From: Octopus sinensis
Taxonomy: Eukaryota
Length of the DNA stretch: 64,000 nucleotides
Direction of reading: 5' to 3'
Assembly (NCBI RefSeq): GCF_006345805.1
Contig: NC_043000.1
Span: 89,652,001-89,716,000, forward strand
This document shows positions 1,600 through 59,623 of this stretch, piece after piece. Position 1 is the first letter of the stretch. Each line of letters opens with the position of its first letter. The notes beneath the pieces were generated by a model. It saw only the letters and a list, made by a program, of their open reading frames with translations, was not told where the DNA came from and ran no database searches. The translations under genes were made by a program, and so were the position numbers.

Positions 1600-1728
1600 T
1601 TGATCCAGTCATACCATCTAAATGTGTTGACAAAATAAATTGCCAAAAGTTTGGTGTAGCAATTTGTACTGCGCCAGATCTGCAAGATTGGGTTCAGAAA
1701 AACTGTCCTATGTATTGTCATAGTTGCC
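1600..1728 (+). CDS. ShK/VWC mosaic protein, exon 1 in window (ShK domain 1), phase 1-1
   Basis: ttttacag|...|gtaagt, 129 nt. Encodes DPVIPSKCVDKINCQKFGVAICTAPDLQDWVQKNCPMYCHSC, the six-Cys ShKT pattern ending CxxxCxxC. Confidence 0.93.
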
Positions 1729-3598
1729 GTAAGTAATCCTTATCTTCCTCTCTCAACCCAAACTTTTGTTCGTACGATTTTTGGATGTGTGTTTATTTCT
1801 CCCATTTCGCCTTCTTTTTCCCCGTCACTGTCCACAGTATTTTGAGAGTCGCTAACATCTACCGCTAGATTTTTGTTTTCATTCTAAGGAACAAACTTTA
1901 GTGTATTGAGATATGTTTTTGTGTATGTTACTTGAATAATCGAAATTAATTTCATATATTTTTCTTAGTTCATTCTTTGTAATCTCATAAATTATACGGT
2001 ATAGTCAAGGCTATATGCCTTGACTATATGTCTGGTAGGTCAATCGATGAGAACTAACCAGAAACTTAGCAACAATGGTAATGCATCTTTGTCGTTTGAT
2101 ATTGAGGCTTCAGTTGTTTGAACTACTGAATTATTTGTTCCTGGATAAGTGTAAACGGTTGAGTATTCAACAGGCACCTGCACCCTTACTGTAACACTCA
2201 GTATATTCAGTGTAACACAGTATGCGACAAGGATGTATCTTTTTTTTAAGTTACAGGTACGATCCCCACAGTAGGGTCTATCCAGTTTTACTCACCAATA
2301 TGGATTGATGCGATACTATAGAAATTGACATTTGCCCAAGATGGTACGCTCTGAATTCGAGCCCGGAACTAAGTGATTACGAAGCAAGCGCAGTCTTACT
2401 CCCAAAATGTAGATTGGTCCAATACTATAGAAATTGGCATTTGCTTAAGCTTCCAGGATTTGAATTCGAATCCGGAACTTTGTCGTTGCGAAGCCAACTT
2501 TTTAACCATTTACCTTAATATAGTTACATTCAAAGCATTAACAAAATAATGGATACTTGCAATAAGATAAGAGTTATGTCTTATGCTAGCAAGTCGACTC
2601 ACAAATGCAACGTTTCCGGTTCGATCTAACTCTGTGGCAATTATACAACTGTGATCTGACATAATCTCGGATAGACCAGATGGAAACTGAATGACAATGA
2701 ATGGTTTCAATAAGAATTATGAAGAGCTAGTCTGTTAACCCGTTTTTTATACTTACTTCTACCCCAAATATATGTGATGACACGTGGCCTAGTGGCTAGA
2801 GTGTAGCAATCATGATCGCAAGATCGTAGGTTCGATTCCCGGACCGGAAGCCCGTTATGTTCTTGAGCAAGACACTTCAATTCACGTTACTCCAGTTTGC
2901 TCAGCTGTAGACGAGTAACTGCCTGCAACGAACTGGCCTCCCGTTCATGAAGAATTTTGAGAGCTCGTTCATTTATACGCCTTGGAAACCTATAAGTCCT
3001 AGACCTCGAGACAGTAATACCCTACGCTTAGGTGACTGTAGAGGAATCCATTCCGTTGAAGGAATTCGAACCAGGATTTCGGTATAAGATTAGCTGCCTC
3101 TCTAACGCCTCCTACTGCTATCAGTCTTGGACACCATGAAATACTACATGAGAACTACGTTTCTTTTGGGAGGTATGGATGTGTGGTTAATAAACTATTT
3201 TGCAACCACGTGGTTTTGGGTGCAGTCCTACTGCGCGGTATTTTGGGTATGTACCTTCTATTATAGCTCAGAGCCAACCGATGCTTCTTAACTGAATTTC
3301 ATAAAGCAGAAACAATATATATGTATAGAATTACGTTGCATATATATATATATATATATATATTATGGACTCGTCTGTCGTAAGTGTTCAGCATCTTCTT
3401 GCTGAACAACCTTCGTACATCAGATGTCGAAGTGATCCCAGAGTACGAAGAAATAAAGTATGCGCAAGAACACAAGACACCACCCGGTCCGGGGATCGAA
3501 ATCACGAACTTGCGATTGTCAATGCAACTCCCAAACCACGAGGCCTTTCGCTTTCACACACACACACACACACACACACATATATATATATATATATA

Positions 3599-4491
3599 TT
3601 GGGTCATCCCATAAATAATGCGTTTTTCCAATTGCACGAGGGGGACGGGATAAACTGTCTGTATCAACTTGTTGTAAAAGCAGGTAGTAATTTTACCTTG
3701 TAGTTATTCTTGGTGCAAATTTTGAGGAGAGCAGTACGATTTTAACAGCTATTTTTTCAAACAAAGCTCTAACGAATGTGACAAAGAAGTATATTCGGCA
3801 TATTTTGCTTTATGATTTCAATGAAAGCAATAACGCAACGGAAAGTGCGAGGAATATTAATGCAGTTTATGGGGATCGAATAGTAAGCGTAAGCCAGTGC
3901 CAGTGGTTCCAGAAATTCCGAGCCAGAGAGTACAGCCTAGAAGACGAACCCCGACCTGGAATATCTGTAGAGCTCGATGAGCCCGTCCTGCAAACCCTGG
4001 TGGAACAAAATCCCTTCGTAACTGTTGAGGAACTAGCAGAGAAGCTTGGATTTGGTCATTCAACCAGTCATTGAAGTCTGTCTTTAAGACTTCTGGTTTT
4101 AAGACAGAAGGAGTTCTTCCGTCAGGATAATGCTCGGCCACACAGCAAAGATTCCAAAGGCTGGAGCAGTTTAAATGGGAAACTATACACCACCCATCAT
4201 ATTCACCCAGCATTGCTCCGTCTGATTATCATTTATTCCGCAGTCTTCAAAATCATTTATACGAAAAAATATGCATTCTGTAGACGAGGTCAGAACAGTA
4301 ATGGAGGAGTATTTTTCGTCATGGACAAGTGAATTTTGGAAAACGGGCTTGGCAGGTCTATCAGATAGATGGAAGAGCATTGTAGAAAAGAAAGGAGATT
4401 ATATTTTAGATTAAAAATAATTTTGTTTATCATAATTTTGAAAAATAAAATAAGTATAAATAAAGGCCGCATTATATATAGGATGACCCAA
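3599..4491 (+). mobile_element. Internally deleted mariner transposon with both TIRs
   Basis: TIRs TTGGGTCATCCCATAAATAATGCG / CGCATTATATATAGGATGACCCAA, TA-flanked. N-terminal HTH (IRHILLYDF..ARNINAVYG..WFQKFR..LEDEPRPG) and frameshifted QDNARPH / YSPSIAPSDYHLF motifs. Confidence 0.92.
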
Positions 4492-56630: not shown

Positions 56631-58735
56631 ACTGTTCTATCTAGCGTGCAAGGAGTCCTATGATGGATGCCTCTTATGCGTTTAAATGTACACTGCATTT
56701 ATATGAATAATATATAGTCTATTGACTAAATTTTTACACGCTAGGCCACTGGTAGTAGAAATTTCTAATATTTCTAATTACCCTTGATATTATTAATTAT
56801 TGATAATTTTGGGGGGATAATTTTTATTTACTGCCGACAAGGAGCTGCGCTTGCGTGGCAAATTTTTAAAAATTAGAATGTATAAGTTGATTTTTGCTCA
56901 CCGCTTGAACATTTTCAGCAATTTCAAATTGTGTTGCGTAATAGAGTGTAAGCAGCTTGAATAACTCCCTTCCTCAATTTTACACCCAAATAAATAAATA
57001 AAAAAGTAATAGTAATGTTACTGTCTCGTTACATGCCACTCATAAGGGCCGTTTTCCCAGTTTCCATAGCGTACAAATTTCCCACCTGAACTGGACGCTG
57101 GTCCTTCGCAGGATTACTTATTTTTGCCAGTTGAGTGGTCTGGAGCAACGTGAAGTGTTTTGCTCAAGGACACAACGCGTCGCCTGATCCAGAAATCGAA
57201 ACTGCAATCTTACAATCATGAGTTCAAAACTCTGAACACCAAACCACGCACCTCCACACCAAAATAAGTATTTCAAGACCGTTACAAAAACTAACGAAAA
57301 TCCTATGAATCAATTTCATATTGCCTCTTTACAACTGAGTAAGTATTTTCAGCTTAGTAGACTGGGGTTATTGAATGTTAAGTGAATACAGCAATAAGTG
57401 AGTCACAGCAGTAATTGGTTTATCTCCCTCCACTATTTCATTGACCTGTGGAACTGTCCATTCTTATAATCAAAATTACGATTCAATATCTGAAATATAT
57501 TTTGTCAGTGAGTTTCTACACGTTTAGAATATAGAGACATCCAAGAGGGTGCATTAGAGGAAATTGCATATAAGTTCTGTATTCTTCTATACGAAATGAG
57601 ATTTATTCTTGCTGCAGGGGTGTACCAATAACAGGTAGTTCAACTTATATATATATATAATATATATATATATATATATATATATATATATATATATATA
57701 TATTATATATATATATAACTGTTCTATCTAGCGTGCAAGGAGTCCTATGATGGATGCCTCTTATGCGTTTAAATGTACACTGCATTTATATGAATAATAT
57801 ATAGTCTATTGACTAAATTTTTACACGCTAGGCCACTGGTAGTAGAAATTTCTAATATTTCTAATTACCCTTGATATTATTAATTATTGATAATTTTGGG
57901 GGGATAATTTTTATTTACTGCCGACAAGGAGCTGCGCTTGCGTGGCAAATTTTTAAAAATTAGAATGTATAAGTTGATTTTTGCTCACCGCTTGAACATT
58001 TTCAGCAATTTCAAATTGTGTTGCGTAATAGAGTGTAAGCAGCTTGAATAAATTCCCTTCCTCAATTTTACACCCAAATAAATAAATAAAAAAGTAATAG
58101 TAATGTTACTGTCTCGTTACATGCCACTCATAAGGGCCGTTTTCCCAGTTTCCATAGCGTACAAATTTCCCACCTGAACTGGACGCTGGTCCTTCGCAGG
58201 ATTACTTATTTTTGCCAGTTGAGTGGTCTGGAGCAACGTGAAGTGTTTTGCTCAAGGACACAACGCGTCGCCTGATCCAGAAATCGAAACTGCAATCTTA
58301 CAATCATGAGTTCAAAACTCTGAACACCAAACCACACACCTCCACACCAAAATAAGTATTTCAAGACCGTTACAAAAACTAACAAAAATCCTATGAATCA
58401 ATTTCATATTGCCTCTTTACAACTGAGTAAGTATTTTCAGCTTAGTAGACTGGGGTTATTGAATGTTAAGTGAATACAGCAATAAGTGAGTTACAGCAGT
58501 AATTGGTTTATCTCCCTCCACTATTTCATTGACCTGTGGAACTGTCCATTCTTATAATCAAAATTACGATTCAATATCTGAAATATATTTTGTCAGTGAG
58601 TTTCTACAACGTTTAGAATATAGAGACATCCAAGAGGGTGCATTAGAGGAAATTGCATATAAGTTCTGTATTCTTCTATACGAAATGAGATTTATTCTTG
58701 CTGCAGGGGTGTACCAATAACAGGTAGTTCAACTT
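56631..58735. repeat. Near-identical tandem duplication: two ~1015-bp units separated by (TA)n
   Basis: 56631-57646 vs 57718-58735 differ by about 4 substitutions and 2 single-base indels (manual comparison). Confidence 0.95.
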
Positions 58736-59606
58736 ATATATATATATATATATATATTATATATATATATATATAATATATATATATATATATATATATA
58801 TATGAAGAAAAGAAAGTAAATCTCGAATGCGTGATAACTGTAAAGACAAAGTAGAAAATTGGATAAAAAACCTAGAAGACGGGAAAAAGTTGCTAGCAGG
58901 CGACTACAGAGATTCGAACCCTGTACATCGCAGATAAAAATTTTTTCGGGTGTGTGTGTGTGTGTGTGTGTGTGTGTGAGTGAGTACAAGCACAACTAAA
59001 ATAATATTCAAGGAATCAAACAGAATTCGCAGCAAGTACTATCCGATACTTCATTATGTTACCAGACAAATATGGGTGAATATATGTTTGTAAGGCCTCT
59101 GTAAAGTGTATACAATTCGTATACAATTTATAATTGGCGTCGATGATGTGAATGAACATGAATAATGAAACAGCTGTAAATTTATATATACGTAAATATA
59201 TGTATATATATATATGTATATATATGCATATGTCTATGTTTGTGTATATACATAGACACACACACACTCACACACACACAATAGCACTACTATACTCTAC
59301 ACTTTGATCTCAACCACAGGGCAGGAACCTGAAAGGCCCAACTCGTTAAGGATCAAAAAAATTGAAATCATGTTCATGAATTCAAATCAACTGTATTTTG
59401 CCGCAACTTTCCAGATTTTGCAAATCAATTTGCCAATTAACCATGCAAATCTCCACTGTATACAACTCATCAAATCCAGTAGTCTTCCTATCGAAAAAGA
59501 ATCTTTATTTAATGGTCTGACACCCTCTGATAATATGTTATCATATTTTAAATTCTAAATGTTATTCAGTTTCCTAAAATCATGTTGTTGCTTTTGTTTT
59601 CTCCAG

Positions 59607-59623
59607 ACCGACCAATACCGTAA
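59607..59623 (+). CDS. Probable terminal exon 15 (D-R-P-I-P-stop)
   Basis: cttttgttttctccag| phase-1 acceptor; G+AC CGA CCA ATA CCG TAA; AATAAA at 59667 and 59704. Short, so no homology support. Confidence 0.5.

Follow-up and report, generated by a model that had tools for sequence, protein, structure and literature searches.

The last 15 coding exons of a 163-kb Octopus sinensis gene encode the C-terminal part of a probable secreted VWA-ShK-VWC matrix protein

We analyzed a 64,000-nucleotide (nt) stretch of the Octopus sinensis genome (contig NC_043000.1, positions 89,652,001 to 89,716,000 of the forward strand), referred to below as the window. On its + strand, a six-frame scan and inspection of splice sites delimited a chain of 15 exons, which extend over positions 1600-59623 and total 1691 nt. 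The original prediction had described these exons as a hidden gene for a protein of ShK-(VWC)x5-ShK-ShK architecture. However, the translated exons coincide exactly with part of a protein already annotated in RefSeq and the gene model is therefore already known; a hidden stand-alone gene is not what the window holds.

The exon chain was rebuilt independently by a six-frame search for Cys-rich stop-free blocks, after which the DNA around each block was read for splice sites. This gave the same exon count, total length, start and end as had been reported, again joined without a stop. Acceptors were AG behind a pyrimidine tract in every case, and donors were GT throughout (GTAAGT or GTGAGT in most). 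The phases formed an unbroken chain along the exons: 1/1, 1/1, five (1->2, 2->1) pairs, 1/1, 1/1 and a terminal piece. Each VWC unit is encoded by a 115-nt exon (phase 1->2; exactly 115 nt in all five window units) followed by a second exon (phase 2->1), whereas the ShK and linker exons have phase 1/1, and this arrangement is a signature of module duplication. Two mini-exons required separate approaches. The one at 39362-39397 was located by a constrained search for an AG/G(T or C).../GT phase-1/1 exon (slashes mark exon boundaries) that completes the split Cys codon T/GT, and the one at 5780-5803 was recognized by comparison with the proteins from O. vulgaris and O. sinensis. An earlier 13-exon model was dropped, as the sixth Cys of the middle ShK domain was missing until the mini-exon 39362-39397 was added.

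Translation of the 15 exons yielded 562 amino acids (aa) with 68 Cys (3 x 6 + 5 x 10), which is in agreement with the three six-Cys ShK and five ten-Cys VWC domains counted originally, and its N-glycosylation sequons were exactly the five that had been listed (NKS, NTT, NIT, NQT and NNS). The exons make up 2.9% of the span and have a GC content of 0.419, compared with 0.347 in introns. At the intron base composition, 563 codons would remain free of stops by chance with P ~4e-19. Intron sizes are highly uneven, from 96 nt inside VWC5 (36321-36416) to 16.2 kb ahead of the last ShK exon (39398-55613). Downstream of the stop codon, the 3' untranslated region (UTR) contains two AATAAA signals.

All 562 residues (562/562) form an exact substring, aa 1482-2043 and thus the C-terminus, of the O. 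sinensis protein XP_029635428.1 (2043 aa), which RefSeq names "collagen alpha-4(VI) chain-like isoform X1". This identity, together with the P value above, excludes chance as the source of the open chain. Isoform X2 (XP_036358134.1) could also be rebuilt exactly, by means of an alternative donor at 36617 (+4 nt relative to 36613) and an alternative acceptor at 39372 (+10 nt relative to 39362). The junctions of both isoforms (..GYCGGSGDGP.. in X1 and ..GYCNGDGP.. in X2) were recovered exactly from the window. The whole gene occupies 163.3 kb on a 164.8-Mb record of GCA_006345805.1, with no second called gene within 10 kb, and the window contains its final ~58 kb, i.e., the last 15 coding exons and the C-terminal 27% of the protein. 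No 8-mer of the upstream 1481 aa of XP_029635428.1 is encoded anywhere in the window, and nothing convincing was found in positions 1-1599 as a Met-initiated signal-peptide exon with a phase-1 donor. The reconstruction thus includes all coding exons in the window, yet only the last 27% of the protein. An extension to a signal peptide, suggested at the outset, failed within positions 1-1599 and succeeded on the full RefSeq protein. Working from raw sequence, the original prediction had recovered the 15 exons of this eukaryotic gene with single-base accuracy; the gene is cut by the window edge. Neither tRNAs nor Rfam families were detected in the window.

A word-indexed protein search returned only an Octopus bimaculoides fragment, XP_014779000.1, and distant mollusc VWC proteins. 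This fragment ("cysteine-rich motor neuron 1 protein-like", 345 aa) is 88% identical to the O. sinensis sequence and spans the region from VWC3 to the end. When it was used as the query in an exhaustive HMMER search, 585 relatives were obtained at E <= 1e-3, among them a 2037-aa Octopus vulgaris protein that agrees almost completely with the 562-aa translation at its C-terminus and whose cluster includes XP_029635428.1 and XP_036358134.1. Searching the literature by accession, by locus name and by combinations of domains brought up no publication on this gene or the family to which it belongs.

Other annotations of the locus are less complete. O. bimaculoides models are fragmented and include "CRIM1-like" models of 345 and 414 aa. 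The O. bimaculoides assembly (locus L001, CM046604.1) has a run of N at L001 278-1072, where the orthologue of exon 6 (11531-11688) belongs, and this gap is the reason why the gene was annotated in pieces there ("collagen XII-like" and "CRIM1") and why a spurious first exon appears. The O. vulgaris model CAI9721272.1 uses a donor at 36522 and an intronic open stretch at 38260-38358 on the + strand (NNPKPTSNSLIDNLFEQCHSTTAIITATLHLIY), located between exons 36417-36613 and 39362-39397. This intronic "exon" costs the ShK domain five of its six Cys, and 24 aa at the start of VWC3 are also skipped. These domains are intact in the O. sinensis and O. bimaculoides models, and the deviations in CAI9721272.1 therefore look like prediction errors.

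The full-length protein has the order signal peptide - VWA x6 - ShK x2 - VWC x2 - ShK - VWC x5 - ShK x2, and the architecture first proposed corresponds to just the C-terminal 27% of it. The signal peptide is found at the N-terminus of XP_029635428.1 (MKLVCVASGLICLFLITFTSTIPS...). Pfam analysis of this protein revealed VWA (874 bits in 6 stretches), VWC and ShK domains, and the DxSxS metal-site motif was intact in all six VWA domains. We could not detect a Gly-X-Y helix (no run of at least five G-x-x triplets in 2043 aa, and no Pfam Collagen match) or a transmembrane segment (the maximum Kyte-Doolittle value of a 19-residue window past aa 30 was 1.14). The presence of a signal peptide and the lack of any other hydrophobic segment agree with the earlier suggestion of a secreted multidomain protein.

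Domains were scored one by one, since whole-protein scores fell below threshold. The three ShK units in the window had 21.3, 25.4 and 22.1 bits against Pfam ShK (PF01549), all above its gathering threshold (GA) of 20.9, and window VWC1 had 28.1 bits against Pfam VWC (PF00093; GA 27.6). The VWC Cys pattern (ten Cys, with a CxxxCxC center and a CCxxxC end) was observed in all five window units and in both upstream units, and the ten Cys and one Trp were invariant over 37 VWC units from 5 proteins. A profile built from these 37 units matched the VWC domain of CCN3 in the PDB (5nb8) at E=2.8e-6; its first half also matched fibronectin type I (FN1) modules, weakly. An AlphaFold2 (AF2) model of one VWC unit, the O. 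bimaculoides orthologue of window VWC4, had a mean confidence (pLDDT) of 93.1 with a 19-row alignment. The best Foldseek matches of this model were the CCN3 VWC domain (5nb8, probability 1.00, TM scores 0.59/0.55) and the collagen IIA VWC domain (5nir, TM scores 0.60/0.59), followed by FN1 modules and von Willebrand factor (VWF) C domains (C4 and C6 among the weak matches); the E-values were weak because the domain is small. The model thus agrees with the two-subdomain beta fold known from solved VWC structures. The ShK profile matched PDB entry 7l2g ("ShTK domain protein") at E=0.027, and an AF2 model of an ShK unit contained three short helices (pLDDT 79.3). Judged by the Pfam scores, the profile matches and the VWC model, the predicted ShK and VWC assignments hold.

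To place the protein among its relatives, hidden Markov models (HMMs) built from the octopus domains were run on 176 relatives and the domain order was recorded. The order VWA(n)-ShK(ShK)-VWC-VWC-ShK-VWC(5 or more)-ShK-ShK(ShK) recurred in a second Octopus gene (O. sinensis LOC115210527 / O. vulgaris CAI9721274.1 / O. bimaculoides LOC106875429), in three Haliotis species ("uncharacterized protein", XP_048254904.1 etc.) and in the brachiopod Lingula anatina (LOC106173996). Thus, although no orthologue of such architecture had been recognized originally, it is present in O. vulgaris and (fragmented) in O. bimaculoides, as well as in the second Octopus gene, Haliotis and Lingula. The proteins are not identical in composition. 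Compared with XP_029635428.1, these relatives vary in how many VWA domains they carry, and extra TSP1 domains occur in all three (the second gene of Octopus, Haliotis and Lingula). Additional C-terminal VWC units are present in Haliotis (VWC-VWC) and Lingula (one VWC), and the Lingula protein has a C-type lectin domain that the octopus protein lacks. Relatives outside cephalopods have long Pro/Thr-rich linkers, whereas those of the octopus protein are short. Many gastropods and bivalves, as well as a cuttlefish, have VWC-only or ShK+VWC proteins, either fragments or relatives, all of them unnamed or auto-named. The second Octopus gene lies outside the window on the same chromosome record, and CAI9721274.1 is two accession numbers away from CAI9721272.1; the neighboring numbers suggest a tandem gene pair.

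The VWC units of the octopus protein could be matched by position. For units 1, 2, 4 and 6, the best score was obtained with the unit of equal number in the second gene of Octopus, in Haliotis and in Lingula, and these scores were higher than those against any other unit inside the octopus protein. Because units match their same-position counterparts best, the VWC array predates the mollusc-brachiopod split, which is taken as roughly 500 million years old. On a shorter time scale, the O. bimaculoides locus is collinear with the window for exons 7-15. Exons 7-12, 14 and 15 aligned without gaps, the acceptor AG was kept in 9 of 9 exons and the donor GT in 8 of 8 internal exons. Exons were 92.5-95.8% identical between O. 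sinensis and O. bimaculoides and their flanks 84-92.5%. As this difference discriminates weakly, we used the synonymous (dS) and nonsynonymous (dN) divergence over 969 nt (dS 0.115, dN 0.040, dN/dS 0.353) and the conservation of Cys (41/41). These values and the retained splice sites indicate that the gene is functional and under purifying selection. The shared domain order and positional matches assign the protein to a lophotrochozoan family of VWA-ShK-VWC proteins, conserved yet so far uncharacterised.

The window holds the last 15 coding exons of the annotated 163-kb gene, and the product is probably a secreted multi-adhesive matrix glycoprotein. The matrix assignment is suggested by the signal peptide, the lack of a membrane anchor, the six VWA domains bearing a metal ion-dependent adhesion site (MIDAS), and the disulfide-bonded tail with short linkers. 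On domain content, the product would be a secreted, N-glycosylated, multi-adhesive protein of the extracellular matrix. Its six-VWA array would bind collagen or other matrix partners in a metal-dependent manner and support network formation, and the disulfide-knotted VWC/ShK tail with its short linkers might form a semi-rigid interaction rod. This putative rod may also hold ligands of the bone morphogenetic protein (BMP) or transforming growth factor beta (TGF-beta) type. The domain order conserved in molluscs and a brachiopod marks a matrix family worth study in research on the lophotrochozoan extracellular matrix.

The protein resembles several known systems in part. Like vertebrate VWF, it is secreted and has A-type domains followed by a string of VWC-type modules; however, VWD assemblies and the CTCK dimerisation knot are absent and ShK modules are present instead. 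With collagen VI alpha chains and matrilins it shares secretion and tandem MIDAS-bearing VWA domains, and with collagen VI it shares only the VWA array; the Gly-X-Y triple helix and EGF or coiled-coil elements are absent, and a VWC/ShK tail is present instead. CRIM1, chordin, crossveinless-2 and CCN proteins likewise have repeated ten-Cys VWC modules, and the CCN3 VWC is the best solved match, but the octopus protein contains no IGFBP, CHRD, antistasin, CTCK or membrane anchor. Because the protein does not show what defines collagen VI, CRIM1 or VWF, these names are labels of convenience, and the public names collagen VI-like, CRIM1-like and mucin-like reflect domain similarity only.

Several points weigh against this matrix reading. 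Three quarters of the gene lie upstream, beyond the window, and are known from the RefSeq protein only, and an internal promoter may give a short C-terminal isoform. Scored singly, window VWC2-5 reached 18.7-21.1 bits, which is under the Pfam VWC cut-off of 27.6, in alignments spanning the entire 57-position profile or nearly so (1-55 or 1-57). The 39-residue ShK model (pLDDT 79.3) drew no Foldseek match, being too small for this purpose. In addition, the putative mechanism of matrix adhesion is derived from domain content.

A different possibility, unlikely as the main role and compatible with a matrix function, is that the secreted protein antagonises or modulates BMP/TGF-beta in the way of chordin, crossveinless-2, CRIM1 or CCN proteins, with the VWC array as its working part. 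The seven VWC units, the CCN3 VWC as nearest solved relative and the RefSeq naming of the O. bimaculoides fragment after CRIM1 are all consistent with such a role. However, neither Pfam nor hydrophobicity analysis of XP_029635428.1 revealed a CHRD, IGFBP, antistasin, CTCK or transmembrane element, and the VWC sequence gives no rule for ligand binding. The long VWA arrays of the relatives and their Pro/Thr-rich, mucin-like linkers in gastropods and bivalves suit a structural protein better. The two roles might be combined. In this speculative and rather doubtful proposal, the VWA-ShK-VWC proteins of molluscs and brachiopods would be a distinct matrix family in which the ancient C-terminal rod tethers BMP/TGF-beta-type ligands to a VWA-anchored matrix. 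If so, the family would be a lophotrochozoan counterpart of the vertebrate growth-factor-storing matrix proteins or of VWF.

Relatives auto-named "mucin-2-like" (Pomacea) and "mucin-19" (Lingula), with their Pro/Thr-rich linkers, raise the question of a gel-forming or mucus glycoprotein. We regard this as improbable: the octopus protein has short linkers of 5-29 aa that are not dominated by Pro, Thr or Ser, and the multimerisation domains VWD and CTCK are absent from the Pfam matches on XP_029635428.1.

It is very improbable that the window contains a stand-alone unannotated gene for the ShK-(VWC)5-ShK-ShK part only, with its own signal-peptide exon just upstream. Such a gene would fit the self-consistent open frame of the 15 exons and the separate "CRIM1-like" models (345 and 414 aa) of the older O. 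bimaculoides annotation. However, exon 1 starts at an acceptor in phase 1, positions 1-1599 hold no Met signal-peptide exon with a phase-1 donor, and the O. bimaculoides split falls exactly on the assembly gap at the exon 6 orthologue. Furthermore, the O. sinensis RefSeq, O. vulgaris, Haliotis and Lingula models place these modules and the VWA arrays in a single chain. Finally, the three ShKT domains in the window and the venomous posterior salivary glands of octopuses could suggest a toxin precursor that releases ShK modules as K+-channel blockers, a link raised by the original prediction, but this is hardly credible: the units are internal to a VWA/VWC protein of 2043 aa (with a spacer of just 5 residues between one of them and VWC5), have no flanking dibasic processing sites and lack the Lys-Tyr pair that is a functional feature of channel block in free ShK-type toxins of ~35-40 aa, the same architecture occurs in abalone and a brachiopod, which are non-venomous lineages, and nothing in the analysis supports a toxin role.

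Table 1. Exons of the gene and other features of the window (slashes in sequence motifs mark exon boundaries)
Feature	Position	Strand	Remarks
Exon 1 in the window: third ShK of the full protein (aa 1489-1523 of XP_029635428.1)	1600..1728	+	Phase 1/1; Pfam ShK 21.3 bits
24-nt mini-exon, linker PTPSVPQN	5780..5803	+	Phase 1/1; ttcag/CAACTC...AGAATG/gtgagt
Window VWC1 (protein VWC unit 3) "a" exon, 115 nt	6777..6891	+	Phase 1->2; with next exon Pfam VWC 28.1 bits
Window VWC1 "b" exon and linker, NKS	8119..8258	+	Phase 2->1
Window VWC2 "a" exon, 115 nt	10371..10485	+	Pfam VWC 19.5 bits across full profile length
Window VWC2 "b" exon and linker, NTT (exon 6)	11531..11688	+	O. bimaculoides counterpart inside assembly gap
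Window VWC3 "a" exon, 115 nt	14868..14982	+	O. bimaculoides orthologue gapless, 95.7% identical, ag/gt kept
Window VWC3 "b" exon and linker, NIT	19024..19151	+	Splice sites; O. bimaculoides alignment
Window VWC4 "a" exon, 115 nt	27158..27272	+	AF2 model of O. bimaculoides orthologous unit, pLDDT 93.1
Window VWC4 "b" exon and linker	33766..33932	+	Splice sites; O. bimaculoides alignment
Window VWC5 "a" exon, 115 nt, NQT	36206..36320	+	Splice sites; O. bimaculoides alignment
Window VWC5 "b" part (NNS) fused to ShK	36417..36613	+	Final Cys codon split T/GT; ShK 25.4 bits
36-nt mini-exon: completes Cys, then GGSGDGPMTTA	39362..39397	+	O. bimaculoides orthologue with in-frame 6-nt indel
Last ShK exon	55614..55733	+	Phase 1/1; ShK 22.1 bits
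Terminal coding piece, ..DRPIP + TAA	59607..59623	+	O. bimaculoides protein ends ..DQPIP
AATAAA in 3' UTR	59667 and 59704	+	
Tandem duplication, last intron	56617-57659 and 57704-58748		Offset 1087-1089 nt; 99-100% identical
Palindrome	~46640-47109		Arms 46668-46837 / 46909-47078, 100% complementary
~400-nt interspersed element	29077-29472, 35684-36069, 40033-40443, 47917-48192	+	61-93% identity
~400-nt interspersed element	54066-54270, ~10785-10889	-	
~400-nt interspersed element, partial copy	3165-3317		
141-aa open reading frame (ORF)	43973-44398	-	Mos1/mariner transposase HTH_48, 24.8 bits (GA 24.1)
ORF with zf-RVT match	32159-32617	-	25.1 bits, slightly under GA
Two overlapping ORFs downstream of the gene	62892-63792	-	No Pfam match
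Three copies of a several-hundred-nt repeat	59815-62578		86-91% identical; start-to-start spacing 1681 and 607 nt
Fourth, partial copy of this repeat, intronic	20827-21030		
Microsatellite (TG)n	13046-13327		TRF
Microsatellite (AGAT)n	16016-16310, 31251-31522		TRF
Microsatellite (TA)n	34505-34977		TRF
Microsatellite (TTG)n	24437-24589		TRF

Outside the exons, the window contains various repeats and traces of mobile elements (Table 1). Both copies of the tandem duplication in the last intron map to a single place in O. bimaculoides (L001 41537-42104), and the duplication either arose recently in O. sinensis or is an artefact of assembly. The long, nearly perfect palindrome, which by eye reaches both ends and has an inner hairpin inside, could be a foldback element or an artefact of long-read assembly. 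The ~400-nt element, usually with a microsatellite next to it, is probably an octopus short interspersed element (SINE); one of its copies also matches L001 35103-35522. The 141-aa ORF with the HTH_48 match, which lies within the 16-kb intron, is a transposase remnant, and the ORF with the zf-RVT match is probably the tail of a reverse transcriptase from a long interspersed element (LINE).

Downstream of the gene, the several-hundred-nt repeat is located just past the stop codon and 3' UTR, and the two overlapping ORFs beyond it look like retroelement debris. Long microsatellites are unusually frequent in the introns, with 23 rows of score >=150 in Tandem Repeats Finder (TRF), and these long intronic microsatellites account for the many spurious Cys-, Tyr- and Ile-rich entries in the list of ORFs.

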